A DNA stretch of 64,000 nucleotides from Girardia tigrina (Eukaryota), in the NCBI GenBank assembly GCA_001938485.1, contig MQRK01249555.1, positions 1 to 64,000 on the forward strand, read 5' to 3'. Made by a program: the position numbers and the translations under genes. Positions 1-17,187 of this stretch are shown piece by piece. The number at the start of each line of letters is the position of its first letter. Positions within the stretch are counted from its first letter, which is position 1. The notes below the pieces were generated by a model. The model did not search any database and was not told where the DNA came from. It saw only the letters and a list, made by a program, of their open reading frames with translations.

Positions 1-1922
1 GTTTTCTTTGACTTATTTAAAAATAATAAAAAACTTTTTCTTTAATCATTTGCTTTTATAGAATAATTTCTTTTATGTTTAAGTGATGATTTTTTTAAGT
101 CGAATGATTTTTTATTTTAAAAGTACATGAATGCAACGGTGGTATTTGTTTTAGATTTCGCTTTGAGAAGGGGGTTTTCTTGTATCGTATACCGAAGTAT
201 ATTAAAATCCAACATGGACACTAATAGTATTATGAAAACAGATCATCTCTTAAAATATAATTTCTATTATTTTTACTTTCCTTACNNNNNNNNNNNNNNN
301 NNNNNNNNNNNNNNNNNNNNNNNNNNNNNNNNNNNNNNNNNNNNNNNNNNNNNNNNNNNNNNNNNNNNNNNNNNNNNNNNNATTTAATTACCATATTCTT
401 TGCATTCTAAAATTTATAATTTCTTTTTTTGACACTGGAAAGTAAATAAATCAATATCATTTTCATAATCACATTGATATTTTTTTAACAATTCATGACA
501 TGTTTCAAGCATTTTTTACCAAAAATAAATAATTGAACGTTGCTTGAACGATCGGAAAACTTAATTATATTGGGGATATTTAATAACATTTGACGCATTA
601 ATTTTAAAATCACTTTAATTCTAAAAACAAAACTCAATTATTTTAGAAACCATTTCCTCAGATTAATCGAAATTGTCAAGTCACTGAATTATTTTTTATT
701 ATATTGTATGAAAAGTCAATTCATTGATTTTGAATTATCGATTGAATTATATAAGGGTAATCAAAAATTTTAAACAAGCTCGATTTGACTGTTTATTTGA
801 ACGTGACGTCACTAAGCGTCACAAAACACTCTCTTATGATGCATATAAAGAATCTTGAATGTATCAATTTTAATATGCTCAGTATTATTAGGCTCACCCT
901 CTTTTCGAGGAATTATTTGAATTTCCATAAATAGATGATATTCGTCAGTAGGATTTAGTAGTATTAAGACAAATAAATTTAATGTTTGACTGAGGACAAT
1001 ATTTGAACTCTACTTTCTTTCAATACATTAAAAATGTATAAGTGGTAATAACATGTGATATGTTTGTCGGTTTTGTAAACAAACTTTTTAACAAAACTGT
1101 ATGGATAAGATTTTTAAACATTAAGGAAACTTTTAATTTATGGGTTTTTCGTTTTCTGCTTGAGATAATCGCAAGTGAGATCAAAGTCAGTTTGTTAGTC
1201 TAATTGAAATCGGAAAAACATCTTCCAAAAGTACACTTGGAACTCAATAAATATATCAAATCTCAAAAAATTGACATCTACAACCAGTGGATTTATAAAT
1301 TTTGCAGTTAATTTTATGTTATTGAAGTAATCGATTCGTTTGATTTGAAATTCTCCCCATAGATATCGAAATGTTTTTATTTAAATTTATGTTTAATATG
1401 TTATGTTTTTATTTAGAAGCACCGACTAATAATGAATTATGAAATATTTTGAAAAGCATGTGAAAGAGCTAATAGACAGACTTAATTAAAAAGATATCTG
1501 TTGGGTTCACTATGCGTGAGCATAGTGTTACAGTTGATGTTTCCCTCAGTCCACTCGACTGAAAATTACGGGTTCGTTCGGTTCCACTAGCCCTTTAATG
1601 ATTTTGAAGTGCACGAAAGCGTAAAAAGCTAATTTTATATCAAAATTTAAAAAGGTGTTTATTTAAACACAGATATGTATTGAATAAAATGATTGTCCCA
1701 TTATTCAGATCATCAATTTCGAGGAAACAACAAAAACGCGGAACATTTGATGATAAAAATAAAATTGGATGAAAACATGTGAATCTCGGGTGTCAAATTC
1801 TGCGGGCAAAAAATTAATTAAATCAATTTGAACAGTTAATCATAACTCGAAATTAAGTCCCAAAATGGTTAACACAATACAGCAGAACGAACAAATTAAG
1901 CAGATATTTTATTAATTTCATA

Positions 1923-2381
1923 TTACAAATTAGAGAACCGATCCCAGATATCTTGGGAAATTGGGCTGACATATTTCATCATGACTGAGTTACCTTCCGT
2001 ATACGATGAGTAATAGAATACAAATGGATGGGGATTCTCTTCGTTGAAAGCAAATGAGAACTTATCAATCAGCATACAGCCTTTTAGCTGTCCTGGTCTC
2101 ATGTACATTTTCTCTGTTTGAGAATATTTAGCAATTTGATGCGGATACGCTGCCACAAATGACTCGGTGACATTTTCTGATTTTGTTTTCGCAATAAACG
2201 GAAAGGTGAAAATTTCTTTAAGACTTGTTCGAATTTTGCTGGCTCTTGACATTGAAGATTTATTTAGAGAAAGATTCTTCAGAAACGAAACGCGCTTTTC
2301 TTTCGACAGATTGACATAATGTCTATACAATATTACCAGAAACTCGAAATCATCATTTCCATTGTAGATTTCTTTGAGTTT
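1923..2381 (-). CDS. DEAH/RHA-like pseudo-helicase, last exon (ratchet and OB-fold)
   Basis: TTTATTTCAG|AAA phase-0 acceptor; 152 codons plus TAA. DDFEFLVILY resembles SDHLTLLNVY, and FVAAYPHQIA...PFVFY...MKYVSPI resembles the OB_NTP_bind domain. Confidence 0.82.
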   Translation of the reverse strand, partial: KLKEIYNGNDDFEFLVILYRHYVNLSKEKRVSFLKNLSLNKSSMSRASKIRTSLKEIFTFPFIAKTKSENVTESFVAAYPHQIAKYSQTEKMYMRPGQLKGCMLIDKFSFAFNEENPHPFVFYYSSYTEGNSVMMKYVSPISQDIWDRFSNL

Positions 2382-2496
2382 CTGAAATAAACATCTTTTT
2401 ACCACTATTTCATCAAATTTAGTTAGTGAAATTAAATCATACAATAATAAATTGACACTATTTTTTAAGAGTATAAAAGTTTATTATTATCATTAA

Positions 2497-3703
2497 ATGG
2501 GGTCACATTTTTTCACGTTCACGAAAATACACCACTAAATCGCGAAAAAAAATACGATGAAGTATTATTAACATGAAAAATTGGTAAAAAATAACTGAAT
2601 GGTAAAAAATAAAGATATTGTTACTTAGTTATTGTGAGGAATATTTTGAATGTTTGATGTTTTGTGTTTGAATGTTGTAAGTTGATTTGGAAATGTGTCT
2701 CTCCTACCAAGATATATGATTAATATTTGAATTTTTATTATCTAAAAATATGTAATATTTTAATTTATTTCTAATAATAAATTAATTGTAAAATTTTAAA
2801 TAAGTTAATTAATTTTATTTACAATTTTTAATAAATAAATCGAATTAATATTTTTTTAAATAATTAATAATCATTTTAATTTTTATTTAATAAATTTTGG
2901 GTAAATATTTTAACAAATTATTTATATCACCGTTTGCTAATAATAATAAGTCATTAATCAATTTAGTTAGAATGCACTCGTACGAAAGCTTTGACAAAGA
3001 TTGTCTTAAGGACAATCAAAATTATGTTAATAAAAATATGAAAAGTCAAATTGGTGTTCTTAATAGTTATAATTAAGAAACAATTTCTTTATTTTTTTTA
3101 AAATTCAGTCATTTTTAATAATTATTTTAAAACATTAAAATTTTGGATAATTATGAAACAATAGTTCTTATTTGATGAATATTAGGTAAAGTTAAATAAA
3201 AAGGATAATCAATTTTCAAATTTGCACAACTAAATGAAAAGATCTTCAAATTGGACAACTAAAAAAATTAATCCTTCAAATTACACAAATATATAAAATA
3301 AATAATTTTTGTTAAAGTGATTGTCGTAATGGCAGTACAAATATAACACCAGCGTAGTGTGTTGTTGAACTTGGAAATGAGAGTTTATATGAGGATGGAA
3401 GTATCCTATTCTTTCGTGTCTGCAATAAGTCAGTAGACCACATTCACCGTGACTCAATAAAATTAATACATTATGAAATGCTGTTAATTTTTTTTGTATT
3501 ATTATAATTTTATCTATGTAAAAATATTTTAAAATGAAATTTCAATAAACCTTTTTCAGAGTTAATAATTGTAGTTGTTAAGTTATAATAATTGATATCT
3601 CTAAATATATATTCAAAGAGATACATAATCGCGAAAACCGCGAAATTTGAGATTATTGGATCGTGATAAATGTATTTTTGGGTCGCGAAAAAAAGTGGCC
3701 CAT
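2497..3703 (+). mobile_element. Non-autonomous hAT-like TIR element with CGGBP1-type zinc-finger remnant
   Basis: TIRs ATGGGGTCACATTTTTTCACG / CGCGAAAAAAAGTGGCCCAT and CGCGAAA subterminal repeats. About 3385-3460 translates LYEDGSILFFRVCNKSVDHIHRDSIK, similar to the CGGBP1 finger. Confidence 0.55.
2633..3065 (+). mobile_element. Solo LTR (family A; TG...TA termini, 5-bp TSD GTTAT)
   Basis: GTTAT|TGTGAGG...CTTAATA|GTTAT. Homologous inverted copy at 49716-50455. Confidence 0.75.
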
Positions 3704-4069
3704 TTAATAAATGAAGATAAATATTACACAAATAAAAATGGAGATTAAAAAATTACCACACGGAAAAAATGTTTTATTCTTTGAACGTGAGCACAAAATA
3801 TAAGTAAAATTGCTCCATGGCAAATAAACGTAGACAGTTAACAATAGAAATCAAACATAATCATAGACAGTAATTTAAATATTCAGGAATCAATTAGATA
3901 CTAGTTTTCAAGATGTCTAGGTTTCGGAAAATAGAATTGATGCTATCTTTACGCCGATTGTTAACGAATATGTTTCTTTACAATCTATAATGAGAGATAT
4001 TGTTGTTTCTTCTTGATTGCTTCTTTGTTGCTTCCCACTGCAGTCGGTGATGGATGTTTTGAAATAAGT

Positions 4070-4480
4070 CATATATTTCCTAATGTTGAAAAGCCGAAAC
4101 AAGTCGATAAACTATTGCTGTACTTGGAGAACACCAATATCCATGGTCGCAAAATTCGAAATTGAATTAGAAAACTTCCAAAATCTTCAATCAATCTATG
4201 GAGTCATCATAACAGCACTTGTGATTGTATTGCTAGAATGAAAAATGCAGTGGAAGATTGGCATTATGCACTTAATTCATTTTATCATTGCAGTCATCAA
4301 ACCACCTGGAAGTGTTTTCATGGGCTAAGATAAGACGTTCCATTGCAACACACCTGGTAACAACAATTTTATGCTGGACAAGTAAGTCCATCTCGCCTTC
4401 AGTACCGAAGACTATGTGAGCGTCTTAATGGAATGGAAAGGAGTTATAATAGACACTCGAATGAGCTTAATTGCAATATT
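4070..4480 (+). pseudogene. Degenerate MULE (Mutator-like) transposase C-terminal fragment
   Basis: About 4230-4330 translates IARMKNAVEDWHYALNSFYHCSHQTTWKCFHGL, similar to RTNNxVEGWHxxLNxxxxxxHPxxW. Stops present. Confidence 0.6.
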
Positions 4481-4622
4481 GTTTTTACCATATGGTTAAA
4501 TGTATTATCACAGGAGAGTAAAATCAATTATCTGCTAAGTTTATCGAAGTTTCTGTTCGCTAAAGATTTGATATTTGAATGAAAAGTCGGTATTGATTAC
4601 ATAGGTTGAAATAAAATACACA

Positions 4623-4885
4623 TGATAGGAATGTTTGAATGTTACGTGTTGATTTTGGTTGTGTCTCTCCTACCCAGATGGATGATTAATATTTAAATTC
4701 TTTTTATCTGAAACTAATTTAATTTCAGTTTAAGTTCAATGTTAAAATTTATTCAAATTTAAAAATCCCTGTTAAATTTGGAATGGTTTAAATCATTTAA
4801 TTTAAATGTTTCAATGAATAAATCAACTTAATATTTTAAAAATAAGTAAAAATCTTTAAATTTTAACCAATAAAATTTATGATGC
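4623..4885 (+). mobile_element. Truncated family-A LTR copy
   Basis: Shares GTGTCTCTCCTACC(C/A)AGAT..ATGATTAATATT with 2633-3065 and 49716-50455. Confidence 0.55.
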
Positions 4886-4890
4886 ATATA

Positions 4891-5500
4891 CGAGGGGTGT
4901 CCCAAAAGTTCACGGACTGAGAGAATATGGCGTGGTCACGTGTGTGCGTGACTGTACCGCGTGGTGTGTGTGTACGATGACATGAGGTGGGAACCAACCA
5001 ATTCTAATTGAGGTGAACTCTCATTGGCTGCCCGTCGGCATGTGTGTGACATACGAATGTATTAATTTGTCATTTGTCTCTCTTGTGGTTAGTATGGAAG
5101 AGGCAGTGAAATCTCAACGAGCAATCATCTATTTCTTCTGGAAGGAAGACACCCCCACTGCAGATATTGTGCACCGTTTACACCGCGTCTTTGGTGATGC
5201 CGCTATGGGAAGAACGGCTGTCTTTAAGTGGGTGCAACGATTCCAGGCAGGGCGTCAATCATTGGAGGATGATTAACGCAGTGGGTGACTAACAACGTCC
5301 GGATGTCAAGAAAAGTATTTTCTTCGATAATGGTATTAGGAAGTTGACACAGAGATGGGAAAAGTGTGTGAAACTGAATGGTGATTATATTGAAAAGTTC
5401 GATAGCGATTCTGATGAGCATTGATCAATTGTGTTAAGTGGAATAAACTTTTTGAATTTGTTGTTACTTATCAGTCCGCGAATTTTTGGGACACCCTTCA
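4891..5500 (+). mobile_element. Internally deleted mariner (MITE-like)
   Basis: TA-flanked TIRs CGAGGGGTGTCCCAAAAGTTCACGGACTGA / TCAGTCCGCGAATTTTTGGGACACCCTTCA. N-terminal HTH (QRAIIYFFWKE...VFKWVQRF) is joined to the C-terminal GIRKLTQRWEKCVKLNGDYIEK. Confidence 0.92.
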
Positions 5501-6219
5501 TATATAATATTTGTTTAAAAAGTGTGTTTTTTTGTCGGTCACGCTTTTAAATGTGAAATTGTGGAGGAATCGAGTGAATCGATTTAAGGGCGTGGTCAAT
5601 ATGGATCCCAATTTTTAAATCATAAATTTGAAAATAAAAATATTTCATTGGTTCGAATTGTTGCAAAACAAGTTTTAATGGAAATTTAGATAGTTATTGG
5701 ATAGTTGCAAAAGCAATGCAGGTTTTTGAACCAAAACTTTAAACAAATGTAACTCAGCACAGAATAAACTTTATTAATCGAAATAAAAACTGTAATATCT
5801 CACGATATTTTTTTCTGTGTTTTTGTTATTTCTCTTGTACATAGTTTTTTTTGTTCATTGCGTATGACGTATTTTTTTGTATATTCAGCAAAGCGTTATC
5901 TTTTCGACCTGTAAATTCTATCTAAAGCCTTACGAATTATTTTTGTTTTTTTTATGATCATGGATCCTTTTCTTTGAAAACGAAAGTCGACATGCAAGAA
6001 ATCAGATAATTTAGAAGACCTAAAAAAATACCATGTGAAACCTAAATACATATCCAACTTTGATATGAATGAGACTCAGACCAATTTGTATTCTATTGTT
6101 TTTAAGAGAAATTAATGCTCAAGATGGAAAATTTATTTTTTTCGTGTAAATTTAAAAAAAATCATGTTCAGTTTTATATATAATGAAATAAATCTCTTGA
6201 AAATTATTATCAAGAGAAT

Positions 6220-6549
6220 TGTTGTTGATTTGGCGGGTTCCATACGGATCATGCGTTTATTGTCACAAACTAAATTATTCAGTGTTGTTCCTAAGACTCT
6301 GTTTCTCATTCTCCAATAATTCGACAGTGACAGTGGATAAAACAGACAGCACAACACAGTTAAGAAGGAACGAATGAAACTCAGAATAGCGTTCATATTG
6401 GTCATTCTATCGGGCAATAAACGGGCAATATAGATGTTAGAAGATAGTGTTTTGATAGCGAATAATACAGAGTAATAAGATTAATAATAATGAATCTTTA
6501 AAAAAAATCAATAATATCGAACATTGGAAATATATGTTATGTCTTAACA
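6220..6549. mobile_element. Possible solo LTR
   Basis: GC-richer block bounded by TGTTG...TAACA. Flanks AGAAT/ATGAT match only partly. Confidence 0.3.
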
Positions 6550-6719
6550 ATGATATTTTTTTGGGATCCGATGTTGAAATGTACGTTTATTTTTTTTATT
6601 AAATAAATCGTCGCTTTGATTAATTGTTTTTTATTTGATAATTTATTTTTTTTAATTGTAAAAGCAGCGAATATAATATATTTTAATTAAACTACTGTAA
6701 AATTCGCTGCTTTTACAAA

Positions 6720-7874
6720 AACCATAAGATTCAATACATTATTGTCACCAAGAAACAAGTTTATTGATGCCCCTAATGTAGAACTCCTAAGGTTAAAGCG
6801 TTAAAGGCGTCGTCTTGGTTTTTGAAGCATATTTCCTGGAGGAAGTTGTCCAGATGCTTGAAAAAATGGTAGTCGGTGGGCGAGAGGTCCAGTGAGTAGG
6901 GTGGATGAGGCAGGATTTCGTAACCTAATTTGTTTAGCTTTTGTAGGGTCGGTTGTGCGATGTGTGGTCGGGCGTTATCATGGAGGAGAATCAACCCCTT
7001 CATAATGACCAATCTTGGGAACATACGTCGGAGCTCGTGATGTATTTTGTCAATTTGTTGGCAGTACTTCTTTGCGGTGATCGTTTCACCAGTATTCAGA
7101 AAGCTGTGATGGATGAGACCGGCTACAGACCACCAAACAGTCAGTATAACCTTCTTTTGGTGGAGTTTCGGTTTCGGAAAGTGGTGAGGAGCCTCATCGC
7201 GGTCCAACCATTGTGCCGAACGTCGCCGATTGTTGTAGAGAATCCACTTCTCATCACACGTCACAATCCGATCGAGAAACAGGTCGTTCATGTTGCGCAG
7301 AAGACGCCTCAAAATGATGAATTTTTGAGTTTCGTTCAATTCGTGAGATACCCATTTATCGAGATTTTTCGATTTCCCAATTTGCTTCAAGTGCCGAGCG
7401 ACGGTTGATGGATCAACGTTAAGCGCTTCTGAGAGTGTTCGAACAGTTGTGCGTGGATTGACTTGAACCGACTCCTTCAATTCGTCGTTGTCAATCGTCA
7501 ATGGGGCGACTGCTATGAGGCTCATCTTCCATGCTGGTATTGCTAGAGCGAAACTTTTGATACCAGCGCTGCACTGTGCATTCGTTGACACTTTCCTTGC
7601 CCCAAACTTCGTTGATGTTTCGAGCGGTTTCAGCTGCATTACACCCTAGCTTGAACTCGTGGAAGTAAATGTTACGAAAATCACGTTTTGCCATTTGTAA
7701 TTAAAATCGAAATTATTATCAAAAGAAACATTATAATATGTTTTAGACAAATATATCTGAAAGAGTATACATTAAGCTTTCGAATGACTCATAACATCAT
7801 ACATGCTTTAGTCGTATAACATTGCGGTAAATACAAAAAAATCAAAAATCTGCATTCCTTTTGCAACAACCTAA
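6720..7874 (-). mobile_element. Mariner (cecropia/Hsmar1-like), frameshifted, 3' TIR lost
   Basis: ORFs 7491-7694 and 6773-7639 contain [32 protein letters not shown]. 5' TIR TTAGGTTGTTGCAAAAGG with adjacent TA. Confidence 0.92.
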
Positions 7875-7966
7875 TAAATAAATAAAAATTCACAAATGAA
7901 TATTAAATATTTATAATTATTAATAATCAAATTATTTTACTATAAATTAATAAGAGCAAAAGTTAC

Positions 7967-8146
7967 TGTTAAATGGTCCGTTTCAGAATTGAATAAATCG
8001 ATAAACAAATCTTCTGAAACTCGAAGAAGAGATACCAGTGTCAGGCACGAAACCAAACATTCGTCCTTGACAGCATGGAGGAGCACAGAGGCGGTCTGGC
8101 AGTCGATTGGTCTCAATTGCAAGCACTTTTTCCCCAGCTCCGTTAA
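7967..8146 (-). CDS. DEAH/RHA-like pseudo-helicase, exon 3 (HA2 domain)
   Basis: TTCAG|TTA and ACA|GTAACT, phase 0. LTELGKKCLQLRPIDCQTASVLLHAVKDECLVSCLTLVSLL fits the HA2 pattern LTxLGxxMxxLPxxPxxAxxLLxAxxxxC. Confidence 0.88.
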
Positions 8147-8299
8147 CTGAACAGTTTTATTGTCAATAATTTTATATGTTCAAATTTATTATCATTATTA
8201 AGTTAATTATTATTTAGGAACAAATTCACTTGGCAACATAACTATGTCAGAAAAATTCATTTGATAAAAAAAGAAGAATTTCCTAAATTTTCATTTATC

Positions 8300-8720
8300 A
8301 ATGTAAAATTTGTGGCTGCTGAATTTAAACATGGACAAACCAGCAAGATACCATACATCGATCGACCGAAAAATGTAATCTTTAATGATAATGTCGCCCA
8401 AGTTCATCAAATGATCCAGGAATCTGGATGAATTAAGATGAGAGACATAACAGAGTCAACAAACATGTCCAAAGAACGCACATGGAATTACGAGAATGCA
8501 AATTCCGGACAAAAATCTTTTTTGACTGAACATATTTATACTGTTCTGTTGGCGCGGTTTAGGCGTAAAAAGCAGGCTTTAAGACGATTAATTACTGTAG
8601 ATGAGACTAGGATTAACCATGCAACTTCATAAACGCAATTAAAATTCAAACAATGAAATGCGAAGGAAAAGTAAACCACAAAAAGGCAAAAACATTTTCA
8701 CAAAGCCTTCATAATTGGAC
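8300..8720 (+). mobile_element. Highly degenerate mariner fragment
   Basis: WAAEFKHGQTS near 8313 and RRLITVDETRINH near 8580. Confidence 0.6.
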
Positions 8721-9928
8721 AATATTTTATAGCGTAAACCCGATTCGTTGCAATGTTATTTAAAGTACTTGTGTTATCTATTCTGTTAACTGAAGATTTT
8801 TCGGATACACAAAATTTGTTTTCTAATCTGGTACTTGCTAAAATAAATCAGAAGGTTTTCCAATGACTGTACTAGGATAAAGACCTCGATCAAAATTATC
8901 TTCTTCTTTTTAAATAAAATCAAAACGTAATTTAAAAATTTTGTGATAAATGAATGAAAAAGGAATTTTATTGGAATAGATAGTAGTATTTTATCGAATC
9001 TTAAGGCGTTTAAACAGAATTAAATGAATTACGTGGTTATATCATTAAGTACCCGGAAAATTCCCGACTGTAATCATAATTATCATCTTAATGTAGTGTC
9101 CCAACAATAAAATCAGCATGCAGAATTCATCTGGATCGAGCAATACATACAGAAACAGTTTCCAGTCTTGCTTCCACTTTTTAAAGATATATATTCTTTA
9201 TTCCTTTTGTGTTTAAAATATAGATAGACCAATGACTTGTCGCTTGAGTGGAATAATTGAATCACAGCGAAAGGAATATTTAGTCAATTTGAATGTCAAT
9301 TAATGAATGATTGTAGCGTTTATTAAATATTTTAGATATGTTTGATTTAAAAGATGGGGTGATACGGCCGATCTCACCGATGCAAACTGGACGGATTTTG
9401 TCAAAATAAAGTCGATAAATCACAGACAAATGATCTTATGGATTTTGACTCTCTGGCTAATGGAAAGATAAAGCAGTTAATGAACACGTTGAAATCTCAA
9501 TCACTTGGCAAACAATTCGGACATAACAAATAAAACCCATCTTCAACAAGTCACAATGAATTAAAACAGTCTCTTGACGCACTCGTCCAATTCTATTTGG
9601 ATAATGCACAGATAATCCACGTTTTTAGCGCAATTTCCATACTGACAATTGCGATTATTAATTGGTTATTTCTGTGTGGATGGATGGGTGGATGTGTATC
9701 CGCAGCTTTAAGTCGTATCTCCTCCTCAACGAATCAATTTCGAGGGCTAGTTCCAAAAGCAAATATGTTAAGTAAGTTCGGAGGATGATTGTGGGCCAAA
9801 AAAATTCCCGGATTTCCTTCCTGGATTTCCCGGAAAAGCCAAAAAACCTCGAAAAAATNNNNNNNNNNNNNNNNNNNNNNNNNNNNNNNNNNNNNNNNNN
9901 NNNNNNNNNNNNNNNNNNNNNNNNNNNA

Positions 9929-12014
9929 CATTTACCAATCGATTCCTGCAATAATTTAGAACAATATTGCCGAAGAAAGTTTTCAAAAATATCCTTTCGT
10001 TCGGTCACAAAAAATTAATCATAGTCAAATACTGATATAAACGTTTGAATAATTAATAGACAACTATTAATTTCATATGGATTAATTAATTAATTTTAAT
10101 TAATTTTATATGGACATTGTTTACTTGATGAAGTTGCTTTTTAGCGCAATTTACGAAAATTAAACCNNNNNNNNNNNNNNNNNNNNNNNNNNNNNNNNNN
10201 NNNNNNNNNNNNNNNNNNNNNNNNNNNNNNNNNNNNNNNNNNNTCGGTAATTTTTTCATGGATGTGCTGTCGGATTATCCAATATTCGAATTAAAGGCAG
10301 CAACAACAAACAATTTTCTAAAATTCATTTTGGTTAAAATTCGATTAAAATCCGCATAATTAATCTTCATGGATTCAAATCGGTAAGTGAGAATGAAACG
10401 AAACGTTTTTAAACGATTACGTCTCAACGTTCTATTTTCTTCACAGATTTGATTCAAGACTTGCAGCCGTCATAAAATGCCTAAGAAACGCTCCCCATCA
10501 CTCACCAATTGGAAAAAGAAAGTATACAACAAGTCATATAAAACCAAAAATGTTTGATAACATAAGGAAATTGCGCTTAAATTGTCACTAGACTTTTTAT
10601 TAACTTGTTTTTAAATGAACCTAGAAAGTTTTACCCTAAAATTTGATTCAAATGACGTATACTGATCAGCAAAAAACTCATCTCGTTTTGATGCTTGTTG
10701 AGGAAGCCTATGATTATGCGCAGCTCAAAACTCGATTCCGAAGTGAAACAAGAAATGGTCGAGCAAAGATTCCGGAAAAAAGAGTCATTGTAAAATGGAT
10801 TGACGATTTTCGAGCGACTGGAAGTGTCCATGGAAAGCGCGGAAAGAACAAGCCAAAACATGTTCGTACCAAAGAAGCCATTGAAGACGTCCATGAAGCC
10901 TTTACTGCAAATCCTCATCTATAAACTCGACGCAATCCATTTGTTTCAACTGGCGACACTGACAGCGAAGAAGACGATCACGGAACAGTTCGTATGTCAC
11001 AAAGAAGCTTGTAGCGAATTTTGAAAGAAGACTTACAGATACGTCCCTATCATTTGCAAATGGCTCTTGTCTTGAAGGAGACCGACTATGCCGCTCGAAT
11101 TGAGTTTGCTCGAACCGATTTGGATCGATTGGATGAAAATGCAAACAGACTCAACAATCTTCTTTTTACGGATGAAGCCCACTTTCATTTAAACGGAAGC
11201 GTCAATCATCAAGACTGGATCATGTGGGCCGATGAAAATCCTCATTGGTTTGATCTTCGTCGACTTCATCCTCAAAAATTGACAGTTTGGATGGGAATTG
11301 GTGTCGAAGGTGTTGTTGGCCCATACTTTTGGGAGCGACAAGGAAATGAGCGCGGAATCAATGGTCGTTGGATGNNNNNNNNNNNNNNNNNNNNNNNNNN
11401 NNNNNNNNNNNNNNNNNNNNNNNNNNNNNNNNNNNNNNNNNNNNNNNNNNNNNNNNNNNNNNNNNNNNNNNNNNNNNNNNNNNNNNNNNNNNNNNNNNGT
11501 CAACAGTTTCCAAATCGATGGATAGGTCGCAGAACACGGGCGCATCCTGCTCCAGTTACATGGCCACCTCGCTCGCCAGATCTTACAGCATGTGACTATT
11601 GGTTGTGTGGCTACATGAAAGGTCGAATTTATCATCGCGAACAACATCTAAGCACACTCGAAGAGTTGAGAGCAGCGATTGAAGGAGTTGCCAATGAAAT
11701 CCGTGGAGACCGCGCACTTCGTGAACGCGTTGTGGCCGACTACAGACGACGTTTGCATGAATGTTTTCTTAGAGATGGAGGACAAGTTGAAATTCGATAA
11801 TTAATTGTTGTTATGTTTTTATGGAATAAAAAACTTGTTAAATTTTTCGTCTCAAAAATTTTTTTAATTTTTGATGTTTTTTTTCAATTTTTTATATACC
11901 ATCAGAATTTGGCGACGCTCAGGATTCTAAAAATGTATAATTTACCTATAAAAAAGTAGGTGGATAAAAAGATCCAATAGAAAAGTACCTTGGAGTTTAT
12001 TTTGCGTCAACCTG
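9929..12014 (+). mobile_element. Tc1/mariner element, DD41D/maT-like (DUF4817 HTH), decayed
   Basis: ORFs 10643-10924 and 11021-11800 contain LFTDEAHFHLNG, VVGPYF, WPPRSPDLTACDYWL. Right end ...GCGTCAACCTG|TA. Left end is probably inside an N gap. Confidence 0.85.
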
Positions 12015-12165
12015 TATATATTTTAAATATCAAAATACATTAAACAATTATGTTTAAATAAAGTAAAATTTAATGTTTATTGTGCATATTGATGTTTAAA
12101 AAAATGTTTAATCGAATTTTCAAATAATTTTATAATATTTTTTGTATAATAATAAATAATAAAAC

Positions 12166-13269
12166 CTCATAATTTGAAAGCGTCGCTACAACTTTTGGCT
12201 GTTGATTAACCGCTCCATTACTGATTGGCCCGCTCGTCTTGACAATCAGTTCAGCTTTGATCAGATTCTCCAACCCACACCTCAACGAAATCGCAAAATA
12301 CATCAATACTCCTCCAAACTCTCTCAAACATTTTTCTCCCATCGCAATTTGACAGAACAAATAATCCGTCACATCTTCTTTCACTTTCAAATAACTAGAC
12401 AAATCACACGATTTGTCGGTCATCATTGAAAACCGTTTATCAACAGTAAACAACTGAATCAATCTACCACTAGGATTCCCGACAAAACCGCTCTTTATCA
12501 TCGAATCTGTAATGTCCGCTTTTTCAACACTCAAACAATCGACCCGACTCGTCTTGTGTAATCTTCGACAACTGACAAACCCGGGATCAATCACATAATC
12601 GAACTTGATGCCGAGAGACGCGAGCGAAGTTGCGTCCATGCAACTCGATACCACAACGACCGACGAGTACGACTCGAGACTCTTTTTCGTCTCATTATTG
12701 TCCCACAGTGAGATATATGCGTTTATGTAACTCACCAATCGACTTGTCAACCACCTGTACGCTACTCGACAATCCGATTGGTTCGCCAGAAACACAAGAA
12801 CTTTCAATCGACTCGTATCAATTGAAGCCGAATCCAATCCGTCGATTTTTCCGCGAAACAAAACGTAAATCGTGTGAAAAACCGCTTCGAGATAATTGTC
12901 CGGTGTCAAATCGAATTCTCCGATCAAATTAATCGATTGAACGTGATTGAATCGATTTTCAATATCGATTATGAAAGAGTTGTCAAATATTCGTGAGAGA
13001 AAATCGACTGGAAGGGGATACGTTAATAGAACGATTTTCAGCGGTTGTAAATTCGATTGTTTTCGTTGATTTTGAATGTATTTAACGTTAGAAACAAAAA
13101 GATCACTGTAAGGGTCTTTCTGATGGTAATTATTGATTATTATAGATTGATAATCTGACAAAAGATTATCGTTCAATAAAACTTTAGTAAAATCGACACT
13201 CTTTACGATTTTATAATCGAAACTATCGTCTATAATACTACAAGTTTTTATTGCTTGACTTTCATTTGG
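12166..13269 (-). CDS. DEAH/RHA-like pseudo-helicase, exon 2 (RecA1/RecA2 core)
   Basis: TTTTAG|CCA acceptor and GAG|GTTTTA donor, both phase 0; 368 open codons. Contains LLNDNLLSDYQSIIINNYH, LKIVLLTYP, VLVFL, DYVIDPGFV, GRLIQLFT. Confidence 0.88.
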
Positions 13270-13734
13270 CTAAAATTTAAATTATTATTATTTTAAATGA
13301 CAAGTGAAAGATTAATATAATTAAAGCAAACATTTTTAAATCTATGTCAATAGAGCGTTAGGATTAATACAAAATAAAGAAATTTAAGTAGGATTTTAAT
13401 AAAATAGTATTATAGTAAATTTTATTCAGATACCACAACTCATGACAATTCACCACATCTGGAAAATTAATTAAATTTTGTAGACGATTGATAAAAGATG
13501 AAACGTAAAATTTTTAAGATTATTAGTAATGTTTTATCATAAACACTAAAAAATTCTTGGTGGATTAGAAAAACAGAAAAAAATATTGAAGGGGTAGATT
13601 TTTTCCAGAAATTTTGGGGAAAAACTGATCTTAATTTCAGATTTAAGGCATGATTGTTTCAGATAGTCTTTAAAAGTGAACGATATTGGCTGCCTTATTT
13701 GTAAAAAAAAATGTTTCGTTCGGGTTTTATCAGG

Positions 13735-13838
13735 TTAAGGTTACATTGAACAAAATACGTACACAAACACTGCTTAAGGTTTTCAAGAAAACATTAAAGA
13801 GTGAAAATCATTAAAATACGATAATCTGAAGGATTTAA
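13735..13838 (+). repeat. Dispersed repeat fragment, second copy at about 19672-19779
   Basis: Shared TTAAGGTTACATT...ACACAAACACTG.TTAAG...AAGAAAACATT...TCTGAAGGATTTAA. Confidence 0.6.
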
Positions 13839-14417
13839 TGTAATTAAATTCGATGTTTCAACTGTTCCATACTTATAAGAATTTAGGGCTTTTAAAAATT
13901 ATATTTTAAGTATGCTCGGAAATAAATATGTAACGGCATAAGGATTATGTTCGCATCACGCTTATTAATATAGATGTAATGGGCGTAACACCGTATGCAT
14001 TGGAGAGACATCATTTTACCCCAGTAAGATTTTTTGTGTAGTAATTTCAAAATTGTTAAGAAAGAGTTTCTTGGGAGATATTATTGATTATATCACTTGA
14101 TCTAAACAAGTTTTCTTCTACTTTGCGGGTATATTTGGTTATGGTTTCCCAACAGTTTAATAGTATAGATTAATGGAGAAATTTAACTTAAAACACGCGT
14201 GTTAGACATTAATTTGGAACGAGTGTTATACTGCCCCCCACATATTATGTAATCTGTGTCGATTTATTTATTTACTTTATTTTTTTATTTTTAATTATTT
14301 AAGATTATTTATTTAATTATACAGTTATTCTTGTATTTAATCATTTATTTATTAAATAATTTATTTAATATAAATATTTAAAAAATGATGATAGACTATT
14401 TTTAAAAAACATAGTAC

Positions 14418-15135
14418 GATCATCAGAATTTATTGTGATTAATTAACTCGTGAAACTGTCGATAAATTAATTAAATCGGAAAATGAAAAATCAAATACAA
14501 TAAATAGCGACAAAAACAAAAATCAGATAAATAATAATTATGATAATATTGGTTTTGTTTTGACTGTTCCCTACTCTGAGGGTTTTACGAAATTCAAAAA
14601 CTATTTTGAAACATGATGAAAATAATTTATTAAATTTAAAAATTGTATCTAGATCACGTAAGATAGAAAGTTTGTTTAGTAGTAAATCTATCACTCCAAC
14701 TGGGTTATGTTCCAATTTAGTTTATCAATATAAATGTAATAGGTGTGACGCACATACATCGGAGAGACTTGTCGTCATCTCTGTAAACGGATTCAAGAAC
14801 ATAATCGCAGGGAAAGTGATAGCAATATTGCTCAACATAAGAAGAACTGTTCGAATAGTAAATTTGATGTGAGGAATTTTAAGATTTTGTGTTCACAATT
14901 TGGTAATTACTGGGAGAGGGTGATTTGTGAAGCATTGTTGATCAAATCTTTTGATCCTAAAATCAATGTCCAAACACCATCCTCTTCAACTTTATTGAAA
15001 GTATTTTCATGATATAAATGACATAATGATTACATAAACATTGCTTTGATATATAAACGCGAGTATATGATTGTTAATTCAGTCTGATGATGACGGTTGA
15101 TCCGTCGAAATTAATCACAATAAATTCTGATGATC
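14418..15135 (+). mobile_element. Penelope-like retroelement 3' fragment (GIY-YIG endonuclease and pLTR)
   Basis: SNLVYQYKCNRCDA/YIGETCRHL..RIQEH...EALLIKSFDPKINVQ with a frameshift. 27-bp inverted terminal repeat at 14418-14444 and 15109-15135. Confidence 0.85.
15082..15118 (+). ncRNA. Minimal type-I hammerhead ribozyme motif in the Penelope pLTR
   Basis: CTGATGA-T-[GACGG ttgat CCGTC]-GAAA-TTAA-TC with a palindromic stem-III loop. Stem I has only 2 bp. Confidence 0.65.
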
Positions 15136-16325
15136 CTTTTTTGTAATTTGTTTAATAATTAATTTATTTTTTACTTTCTTATTTTTTATTCATTTATGTA
15201 ATAATTGATTCACTAATTTATTTATGAATCTGTGTTGATTACACAATTTCGTTTCGAATTAGGGTAATAACTGGCGGAATGGATGAATAAAATTGTTAAT
15301 TAATTAATAAAAAATGAAATAATTAATTATTAATTGATTGAAATTCAATCAAATCAAATTTATTCATTTATTTAATAAATAATTTATTTAATAATTCATT
15401 TATTCTTTACTTTATTTACATTTTATTCATTTATGTAATAATTGATTTATTGATTCACTAATTTATTTATTCAATGATTGAATAAATAAATTAATTATTT
15501 AATGAATGAATGAACTAATTTAAGAAAGAATAAATAAATTAGTGATTAAATTATTACATAAATGAATAAAAAGTAAATAAAGTAAAGAATAAATTAATTA
15601 TTAAATAAATTATTTAATAAATAAATGATTAAATAAAAGAATAACTGTATAATTAAATAAATAATCTTAAATAATTAAAAATAAAAAAATAAAGTAATTA
15701 AATAAATAAATCTACACAGATTACATAATATGTGGGGGCAGTATAACACTCGTTCCCGTTCCAATATTTTTTTATTAAAATTATTTTTTTAAGTATTTGA
15801 TTTCGTAGACCTTTTAATTCTAATGTTTTTTTAATGATATTAAAAATATGTAAATAATTATTTTAAATAATTTATAAATGTATATTTTTATAGTAAATTA
15901 TTTGGTAAATTTTCAATAATTTAATTTAATTTCCGTCTACATGTTTTTTGAATTTTTAAAATATTTTTTTATTTTTTTTAATTATTGTTTTTTTTCAATT
16001 AATATTTGATAAATTCAAAATATGATTTTCCTAAAATAAAAATTTTGTTCCTATCAATATTTATTAATTGTTTAATTATTCGATTTCGAGAATTTAAAAT
16101 AAAAGATTATTTTTAGAAAAGAATTAAAATAATGTATTAAAAAATAACAGAATTAAATTTTTAATAAAACCAAAGACAATTAAAAATTTTCCAAATGAAT
16201 ATATAATAATCAATACTAAATGTATTGTACATAATAAAATAAAGAAAATCCAAAAAAATCAATAAATGAACAAATTATTGTTTGCTGTAATCATATTAAA
16301 TTAATTACCAAAAAAATTTTTTTAC

Positions 16326-16508
16326 TTCAATCCAAATGGTATTCTGTAATTTCGGAAAACTTTCGAAAAATTCATTCAATAAATAAACTCCATTTAAAAT
16401 TATAGGTAAAAATTCATTCAGTGAATTTTCAATAATTTCACGAAAATCGATTTTATAACTCGTAACGATTTTACGCTTTTCGATTTTAACAATCGATGAA
16501 AATTTCAT
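16326..16508 (-). CDS. DEAH/RHA-like pseudo-helicase, exon 1
   Basis: ATG 16508 to GAA|GTAAAA, phase 0. Splicing gives TIWIE|PNESQA, aligning by position with DEAH motif Ia (IxCTQPRRVAA). No GxTGSGKT after PIILNG. Confidence 0.7.
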
Positions 16509-16691
16509 TTTAGCAATTGATAAACCAAAAGTGACAAAAAAACCGGTTTTAGTTTTCAATTAATTTTACCACAATATTTTTCAAAAATGTAAACTAATGG
16601 TGAATATTTAAACAAAATTGTTTATATTTTCTTCGAAAATAATCAACAAGATAAGATTTGAATGATGTATTTTTTTAACAAAATATCTACA

Positions 16692-16697
16692 TTTATT
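16692..16697 (-). terminator. Candidate poly(A) signal AATAAA of egr
   Basis: First AATAAA on the - strand after the egr stop. AT-rich context makes a chance match possible. Confidence 0.35.
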
Positions 16698-16740
16698 TTT
16701 CAAAGCCTTTACAAATATTTTTTTGCAAAAAATAGAATAT

Positions 16741-17187
<447 letters not shown>

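Follow-up and report, generated by a model that had tools for sequence, protein, structure and literature searches.

A spliced and conserved flatworm gene for a probable DEAH/RHA-derived pseudohelicase in Girardia tigrina

Introduction

Can a gene whose product has lost every motif with which helicases handle ATP still be a working gene, and what would be left for its protein to do? This question is raised by a locus in the flatworm Girardia tigrina, on a stretch of 64,000 nucleotides (assembly GCA_001938485.1, contig MQRK01249555.1, positions 1 to 64,000) that we refer to as the window and that consists of AT-rich, eukaryotic DNA (GC content of 18-39% across 2-kb bins). A preliminary description of this locus, made by eye from the sequence, had proposed a four-exon gene on the minus strand for a protein of 641 amino acids (aa) with the fold of a DEAH-box helicase, destroyed ATPase motifs, and a role as scaffold, RNA clamp, or decoy for G-patch cofactors.

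The computational analysis reported here documents how the gene is built and expressed, to which proteins it is homologous, which motifs it has lost, and that it is under purifying selection. We consider it very probable that this is a working gene, confined to one lineage, for a pseudohelicase derived from the DEAH/RHA class of helicases, and the competing explanations are weighed below alongside the evidence that bears on each of them.

Results

The gene is spliced, expressed, and complete

The four exons of the gene (183, 1104, 180, and 459 nt, with the stop codon counted in exon 4) are separated by GT..AG introns and all join in phase 0 into a frame of 641 aa. This frame is open across all exons and shows no disruption of the kind by which a pseudogene is recognized. 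Every coordinate of the model originally proposed by eye was borne out. The window contains three assembly gaps (9859-9927, 10167-10243, and 11375-11498), all of which fall within intron 2 (12165..8147) and touch no exon.

Evidence for splicing comes from the contigs of four public RNA runs, each from a different study, that were mapped to positions 12100-16740 of the window. One contig in each of the four runs contains the joint 16326/13269 that links exon 1 to exon 2, and no other joint was seen at intron 1; the sequence left out between them has CT..AC at its ends on the plus strand and hence GT..AG on the strand of the gene. In all four runs, contigs moreover break exactly at position 12166, the predicted donor site of exon 2. 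Intron 1 is almost without depth apart from a repeat in its middle, which means that the four runs are RNA. The sequence of exon 2 is present in small public runs of eight studies. The gene is spliced and expressed, and the first exon joint of the preliminary description is seen in transcripts.

The repeat in the middle of intron 1 (ca. 14400-15350) is a separate matter, being an expressed high-copy element unrelated to the pseudohelicase gene whose summed contig depth reaches up to thousands in all four RNA runs, with many joints and strand switches.

The transcript contigs also speak to the completeness of the gene. Since they extend upstream past an in-frame stop codon at 16562..16560 while the start codon lies at 16508, the N-terminus is complete. 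The contig X1 of 2057 nt is the exact sum of 280 nt (97 nt of 5' untranslated region (UTR) and exon 1; 16605..16326), the 1104 nt of exon 2, and 673 nt beyond the exon 2 donor, which in turn equal exon 3 (180 nt), exon 4 (459 nt), and 34 nt of 3' UTR. A related protein of 539 aa from UniParc, P0001, reads through both remaining joints, with TNYQ/LTELG at the border of exons 2 and 3 (SNYE/LTELG in the window) and DHAE/KLKAIY at the border of exons 3 and 4 (DHLT/KLKEIY in the window). Given the length of X1 and the colinearity of P0001, no further exon can be accommodated in the assembly gaps or elsewhere. A Walker A pattern was found in none of the exons, nor in intron 1 or the 2 kb upstream of the gene. 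We consequently rejected the idea that the gaps or intron 1 conceal an exon with a P-loop, and the absence of motif I from the protein (PIILNGVYLL at its place), as first read by eye, stands without any additional exon that would restore it.

The gene is found in three species of a seemingly narrow animal lineage

P0001 was the sole relative to emerge from a word search. It starts inside the first RecA-like domain (RecA1), lacking the N-terminal ca. 85 residues, and is 46% identical to the window protein in exon 2, 67% in exon 3, and 52% in exon 4, which makes exon 3 the best conserved part of the protein. An exhaustive HMMER search with P0001 as query against 1.84 billion representative proteins recovered only two further members of the family, P0002 and P0003, with canonical DEAH helicases appearing only at E-values of 4e-8 or weaker and at ca. 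24% identity.

P0002 (347 aa) is the product of a soil-metagenome contig of 1428 bp (L053) that represents genomic DNA of a third species (GC content of 28.5%). Its exon 1 also has 183 nt and 61 aa (MKFSS...ICIE/GT), its intron 1 is a GT..AG intron of only 44 nt at the same position as the 3056-nt intron of the window, and its exon 2 of 1077 nt ends in NYE/GT. P0003, a fragment of 104 aa, falls among the dispersed copies of exon 2 described further below. Two other species thus have this gene intact, with identical junctions and with motifs that have degenerated alike, at ca. 46-50% identity among the three relatives, and these searches suggest that its distribution is limited to a narrow lineage of animals. 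The soil metagenome as the source of L053 places the gene in a soil-dwelling relative as well.

Differences between strains and species point to purifying selection

A DEAH helicase copy that is decaying yet still transcribed, and open merely by chance, would readily combine destroyed catalytic motifs with introns full of transposon debris, exon 2 pieces scattered as broken copies, and no more than ca. 24% identity to any canonical helicase. The substitutions in the gene tell a different story. Between the contigs of the four transcriptomes and the window, we counted at least 29 coding differences, of which 21 synonymous and 8 non-synonymous ones are among those listed, whereas the neutral expectation is 1:3.8 (synonymous to non-synonymous); from the listed 21:8, the ratio of the proportions of non-synonymous and synonymous differences (pN/pS) is ca. 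0.10. Two runs for which all differences are listed gave 7 synonymous and 2 non-synonymous ones.

With consensus sequences of the exon 2 repeat families (see below) as outgroups, the changes private to the lineage of the gene are 7 synonymous and 7 non-synonymous ones, and those private to decayed repeat families are 6:29 and 0:6. The oldest repeat family shows 22:16, as expected if its branch belongs in part to the constrained lineage of the gene. Over the longer distance to L053, synonymous sites of exon 2 are saturated (pS of 0.80) at a pN of 0.36. These comparisons show a gene under purifying selection whose protein nevertheless evolves fast, and the selection that had been postulated for this locus agrees both with the low pN/pS between transcripts and window and with the intact frame in two other species.

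Beyond the low pN/pS, a transcribed pseudogene would have to explain 641 codons that stayed open over four exons, the existence of a spliced mRNA, an open frame and junctions that were kept in two further species although synonymous sites are already saturated, and degenerate motifs that have themselves become conserved, such as NN-x-H-x-[KR]-DPY-x-DL-x-VSN. We regard this explanation as largely refuted and assign it a negligible probability. The transposons within the same introns do carry lesions, as had been noted at first sight: the mariner copy of intron 3 is split between two reading frames.

The protein descends from DEAH/RHA helicases

Searches were made with individual exons, and P0001 represented exons 2 to 4 in searches and structure prediction. 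Exon 2 matched helicases of the PDB in phmmer searches (HrpA at 5.9e-9, DHX35 and DHX15 at 2.6e-5) in alignments that begin ahead of motif II, end past motif VI, and are in register motif by motif, while P0001 found DHX35 (3.9e-6) and then Prp2 as its best PDB matches. Among Pfam models, HA2_C matched exon 3 (E-value of 6.6e-4; 20.6 bits, under the gathering cut-off of 21.3) and OB_NTP_bind matched exon 4 (E-value of 4.3e-5; 24 bits, under the gathering cut-off of 29.5), and both models also match P0001. Nothing in Pfam matched exon 2, and the Helicase_C and DEAD models gave no match at all. The weak HA2 and OB_NTP_bind signals that the preliminary description had foreseen were thus present, but the equally foreseen weak signals of DEAD and Helicase_C were not.

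An AlphaFold2 model of P0001 (built from a 24-row alignment; mean predicted local distance difference test score of 80.8, predicted template modelling (TM) score of 0.79) was compared to the PDB with Foldseek and matched DHX15, Prp22, DHX8, Prp2, Prp43, Prp16, and DHX37 over all domains, with E-values of ca. 1e-22, query-normalized TM scores of 0.70-0.78, and 15-19% sequence identity. The expected superposition on Prp43 was therefore obtained for this orthologue, as well as on DHX15, Prp22, and Prp2. The protein contains two RecA-like domains, the first of which is shortened, and the module of winged helix, HA2, and oligonucleotide/oligosaccharide-binding (OB) fold; structural segments that had been listed as kept (VIDPGF, LTELG, and the OB strands) are indeed retained in the alignment. 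Sequence and predicted structure together indicate a descendant of DEAH/RHA helicases that kept RecA2, winged helix, ratchet (HA2), and OB-fold around a shrunken RecA1.

The motifs for ATP and much of the apparatus for RNA translocation are gone

To read the motifs, the sequences were aligned to canonical DEAH helicases with HMMER and MAFFT, and the register of exon 1 was set by hand (Table 1). The motifs that define the enzyme, i.e., motif I (GxxGxGK[ST]), motif II (DEAH), motif III (SAT), and the arginine fingers of motif VI, are all absent. The alignments uphold the by-eye readings of motifs II (NNYH), III (TYP), V (SSCMDATSLA), and VI (IKSGFVGN). At the place of the P-loop, the window protein reads PIILNGVY and the L053 protein PIIINGLY, in both cases ca. 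6 residues short in the hand-made register.

Table 1. Helicase motifs in canonical DEAH helicases and in three members of the family
Motif	Canonical	Window	P0001	P0002
II	DEAH	NNYH	NNFH	NNLYH
III	SAT	TYP	TYV	TYL
IV	LVFLTGQ	LVFLANQ	LVFLANS	LAFVAST
V	TNIAETS	SSCMDAT	SNCSDKN	SNTTDKT
VI	QRxGRAGR	IKSGFVGN	VRSHYLSN	MRTHYAHN

The losses extend to elements with which DEAH helicases grip and move RNA. Roles in RNA translocation are known for the arginines of motif Ia, for the 3' hairpin that carries an RF dipeptide, and for the threonine of motif V (PMC5473145), and the 3' hairpin bookends the RNA stack and is required for unwinding (He et al., PMC5473145). In the window protein, all of these are replaced or deleted: the place of motif Ia reads IE/PNESQA (IE/TQNSGS in L053) with its arginines replaced, and only ca. 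21-25 residues separate it from the TDG-like place (motif Ic), compared to ca. 47 in canonical helicases. This deletion of ca. 26 aa, common to the window and L053, would have removed the GY...RF 3' hairpin according to the hand alignment of exon 1. Besides the threonine of motif V, that of motif IV is replaced as well.

In all three species, the Asp-Glu pair of motif II has become Asn-Asn and both arginine fingers are gone. The ATP site and much of the RNA translocation apparatus were thus lost long ago, since the loss is common to all three species and has settled into new conserved strings such as NN-x-H-x-[KR]-DPY-x-DL-x-VSN. We infer that the protein cannot bind or hydrolyse ATP in the canonical way.

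One might nevertheless suspect a helicase or NTPase that works with non-canonical residues or an isoform that gains a P-loop by other splicing. Rare isoforms would be invisible to contigs, and the histidine of motif II and the VIDPG segment have been kept. Yet there is no Walker A pattern for such an isoform to recruit from the exons, intron 1, or the 2 kb upstream, the joint of exons 1 and 2 is the only one seen at intron 1 in four studies, and exon 1 has an identical length and start in L053, while the replacement of Asp-Glu by Asn-Asn and the loss of both arginine fingers are shared by three species. We therefore see hardly any chance that the protein is still an enzyme.

Canonical DEAH helicases are encoded elsewhere in the genome

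Searching the genome with a named DHX33 probe revealed dozens of canonical DEAH exons, among them long open frames of 740 and 884 aa, the former of which is 44% identical to a DHX33, and a DHX15-like exon of 554 aa on contig C244868. Because canonical DEAH genes are numerous and have long open exons, the pseudohelicase appears to be an extra gene and not an essential helicase in decay. On the side, apparently the same canonical DEAH frame of 571 aa occurs with identical scores on four contigs (C132321, C153434, C69250, and C213643), which may reflect redundancy of the assembly or else a helicase gene that has recently become multi-copy.

The locus could alternatively be the degenerate orthologue of one conserved helicase of the DHX35 or DHX33 type that was disabled in this lineage, instead of an additional paralogue. 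DHX35 is repeatedly the best eukaryotic match in the PDB, and the best canonical matches of the exhaustive search have ca. 700 aa, the size of DHX33 and DHX35, with one of them named DHX33. These scores are weak, though, and nearly tied with those of Prp2 and HrpA, and the genome holds many canonical DEAH loci including the 740-aa frame with its 44% identity to DHX33. We thus consider such an orthologue unlikely. With the scores of DHX35, Prp2, and HrpA nearly tied, no canonical subfamily among DHX35, DHX33, Prp2, and HrpA is singled out as the parent.

A part of exon 2 has been amplified across the genome

A second feature of the gene, absent from the preliminary description, is the repeated nature of ca. 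770 bp of exon 2. This exon has more than 100 six-frame matches in the assembly of 1.43 Gb, most of them with stop codons. By contrast, exons 3 and 4 occur only once each, and exon 1 is accompanied by a single decayed copy. The copies of exon 2 (at loci including L002-L012 and L033-L052) share ca. 770 bp with the window at 72-91% DNA identity and form at least three repeat families with recurring end points at 13120/13107, 13042/13037, 12922, ca. 12700, 12598, and 12276. Each family consensus differs less from the window (86-95% identity) than the families differ among themselves, and only the window copy has helicase sequence on both flanks, as do the orthologues. Being central to the families and the sole copy embedded in helicase sequence on both sides, the window gene is the probable source of the repeats, which would be captured or duplicated fragments of it.

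The opposite direction, in which the gene would belong to a mobile element or have arisen from one, could invoke the more than 100 matches of exon 2 and three families with sharp common end points. It is hard to reconcile with exons 3 and 4 being single copy and exon 1 having just one decayed copy, with a window copy at the center of a star of families whose consensus sequences are 86-95% identical to it, with helicase parts flanking this copy alone as in the orthologues, and with copies that run into foreign sequence, i.e., a new start codon upstream and a zinc-finger-like module downstream. We rejected a repeat-derived exon 2 on the grounds that neither exon 3 nor exon 4 is repeated and that the window copy is central to the families, and we consider a mobile-element origin of the gene highly improbable.

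The exon 2 copies are chimeric, with their own upstream start codon (MSSYxKSDDISK...) and a reading frame that passes into the zinc-finger-like module at 12276, inside the exon. By eye, the two cysteine patterns of this module (WKCERCELTN...C..C and W.C....C...N......C..C) are of the RanBP2 zinc-finger type; Pfam found no significant family in it. Searched by itself, the module matches the genome at more than 100 places, with some matches lying several times in intact frames of 400-1100 aa, and it may represent a large gene family. Our inspection for terminal inverted repeats around the repeat units returned nothing convincing. Two frames of 876 and 835 aa beside exon 2 matches were discarded, given that none without X remained on rescan, and were taken for runs of N.

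Gene neighborhood and feature coordinates

On the same strand, an egr-like gene of the C2H2 zinc-finger type has its last exon at 16744-17187, which ends 235 bp upstream of the pseudohelicase start codon. No listed contig bridges to the egr-like stop codon at 16744, with mRNA contigs ending at 16565-16605, so that a dicistronic unit finds no support, though contigs could miss one. All coordinates are given in Table 2.

Table 2. Features of the pseudohelicase locus and of its dispersed copies (window positions unless a locus is named)
Feature	Position	Strand	Remarks
5' UTR, at least 97 nt	16509..16605	-	contigs reach 16605, 16602, 16569, and 16565
In-frame stop upstream of ATG (start at 16508)	16562..16560	-	frame read in the window; contigs extend past it
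Exon 1, 183 nt, 61 aa (MKFSS...TIWIE)	16326..16508	-	joint 16326/13269 in 4 runs; counterpart exon in L053
Exon 1 content	16326..16508	-	RecA1 strand 1 and helix 1 remnant without P-loop (PIILNGVY)
Intron 1, 3056 nt, GT..AG	13270..16325	-	contains unrelated expressed repeat at ca. 14400-15350
Exon 2, 1104 nt, 368 aa	12166..13269	-	PDB phmmer matches, multiple sequence alignment, contig ends at 12166
Exon 2 content	12166..13269	-	remainder of shrunken RecA1 (NNYH, TYP), RecA2 (FLANQSD, SSCMDATS, IKSGFVGN), winged helix
Amplified part of exon 2, aa ca. 51-331, ca. 770 bp	12276..13120	-	more than 100 dispersed, mostly broken copies
Intron 2, 4019 nt	8147..12165	-	all 3 assembly gaps and a plus-strand mariner-type transposase remnant
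Mariner/Mos1-type transposase remnant, intron 2	11021..11800	+	interrupted by assembly gap
Exon 3, 180 nt, 60 aa (LTELG...TDHLT)	7967..8146	-	start of HA2/ratchet; Pfam HA2_C
Intron 3, 5585 nt	2382..7966	-	frameshifted mariner copy and second HTH_48 fragment
Mariner copy, intron 3	HTH_48 7700..7494, Transposase_1 7645..6776	-	Mos1-type; two different frames
Second HTH_48 fragment, intron 3	5013..5276	+
Exon 4, 459 nt, 152 aa and stop	1923..2381	-	rest of HA2 and OB-fold; Pfam OB_NTP_bind
3' UTR, ca. 34 nt	1889..1922	-	AATAAA at ca. 1913..1908, ca. 10 nt past the stop; length inferred from contig letters
Zinc-finger-like module of exon 2 copies	L003:1252-1563	-
Zinc-finger-like module of exon 2 copies	L004:1470-1793	+
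Zinc-finger-like module of exon 2 copies	L041:548-781	+
Zinc-finger-like module of exon 2 copies	L012:2008-2205	+

Discussion

The proposal of an ATPase-dead DEAH/RHA fold under selection finds support in four independent lines of evidence: a spliced mRNA in four studies, an intact gene in two other species, an excess of synonymous over non-synonymous differences (21:8), and a confident model of the orthologue that superposes on canonical helicases. Several points weigh against a functional pseudohelicase or limit how far its case can be taken. With respect to selection, only the listed part of the differences was counted for two of the four runs, the protein evolves fast (ca. 46-50% identity among the three relatives), and the 7:7 count of private changes is small. 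With respect to the fold, the searches and the model draw on single exons and P0001 instead of the joined 641-aa window protein, the model lacks the N-terminal ca. 85 residues because P0001 begins inside RecA1, and canonical helicases within the AlphaFold2 alignment may have pulled it towards their own fold. The lack of ATPase activity, finally, is a reading of the sequence.

Among known proteins, the window protein shares with DEAH/RHA helicases (DHX15/Prp43, DHX16/Prp2, DHX8/Prp22, DHX35, and HrpA) the order of RecA1, RecA2, winged helix, ratchet (HA2), and OB-fold, alignability from before motif II to the OB-fold, and a predicted fold with TM scores of 0.70-0.78. It differs from them by at most ca. 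24% identity, the missing P-loop, the replacement of motifs II to VI, and the deletion of ca. 26 aa with the 3' hairpin. The vertebrate DEAH-family paralogues DHX32 and DQX1 are reported to have partly divergent motifs and keep the P-loop and most other motifs, unlike the window protein that lacks every ATP motif.

The validated pseudohelicases that we found in the literature, Utp25 and MUT-15, are both derived from DEAD-box proteins. MUT-15 of Caenorhabditis elegans is a DEAD-box-type pseudohelicase in which DEAD has become NNAE, and it is reported to have no ATPase activity and to serve as a scaffold and RNA platform (bioRxiv 10.64898/2026.09.04.749402). The window protein resembles it in keeping the helicase fold with degenerate ATP motifs and in having replaced the Asp-Glu pair of motif II by Asn-Asn (DEAH to NNYH), but MUT-15 is of DEAD-box origin with two RecA domains only, whereas the window protein derives from the DEAH/RHA class and has kept winged helix, ratchet, and OB-fold. 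Utp25/Def, a DEAD-box-like and essential component of the small-subunit processome whose helicase motifs are dispensable (PMC9539457), offers a precedent for a non-catalytic helicase shell. It belongs to another helicase family, however, and is ancient and conserved across eukaryotes, in contrast to the three closely related sequences that make up the window family among 1.84 billion proteins. Word searches of the literature found no paper describing a pseudohelicase of the DEAH/RHA class, which is weak evidence of novelty.

Pseudoenzymes often scaffold or regulate active members of their own family. The protein described here would most likely be a rigid platform for binding that needs no enzymatic turnover, much as Utp25 and MUT-15 are. 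As a scaffold, adaptor, or competitor, it would receive protein partners on the conserved surfaces of RecA2, winged helix, and ratchet, possibly with RNA binding via the side of OB-fold and ratchet. We favor such an ATP-independent platform over the RNA clamp that had also been proposed, because the ATP site is lost and most residues that grip RNA are replaced; with the motif Ia arginines, the 3' hairpin and its RF dipeptide, and the threonines of motifs IV and V replaced or deleted, the clamp version is weakened as judged from the alignments. Partner and pathway are a matter of speculation. G-patch peptides bind the winged-helix domain and RecA2 (PMC7132122), so that a role as G-patch decoy is possible.

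A bolder version would make the gene the first pseudohelicase of the DEAH/RHA class and a flatworm-specific, MUT-15-like scaffold in an RNA-silencing or RNA-processing complex, with exon 2 fragments feeding back on it either as a source of small RNAs against the mRNA of the gene or as truncated competitor proteins. We regard this combination as improbable. The amplification of a fragment of a coding exon nevertheless constitutes a second, unexplained feature of the gene.

The gene is a clean natural case from the DEAH/RHA class, with all five domains of the shell still present but neither the ATP motifs nor the elements of the RNA ratchet. It can show which surfaces of DEAH helicases serve without the motor, and it may point to a lineage-specific regulator of the splicing, ribosome-biogenesis, or small-RNA machinery.

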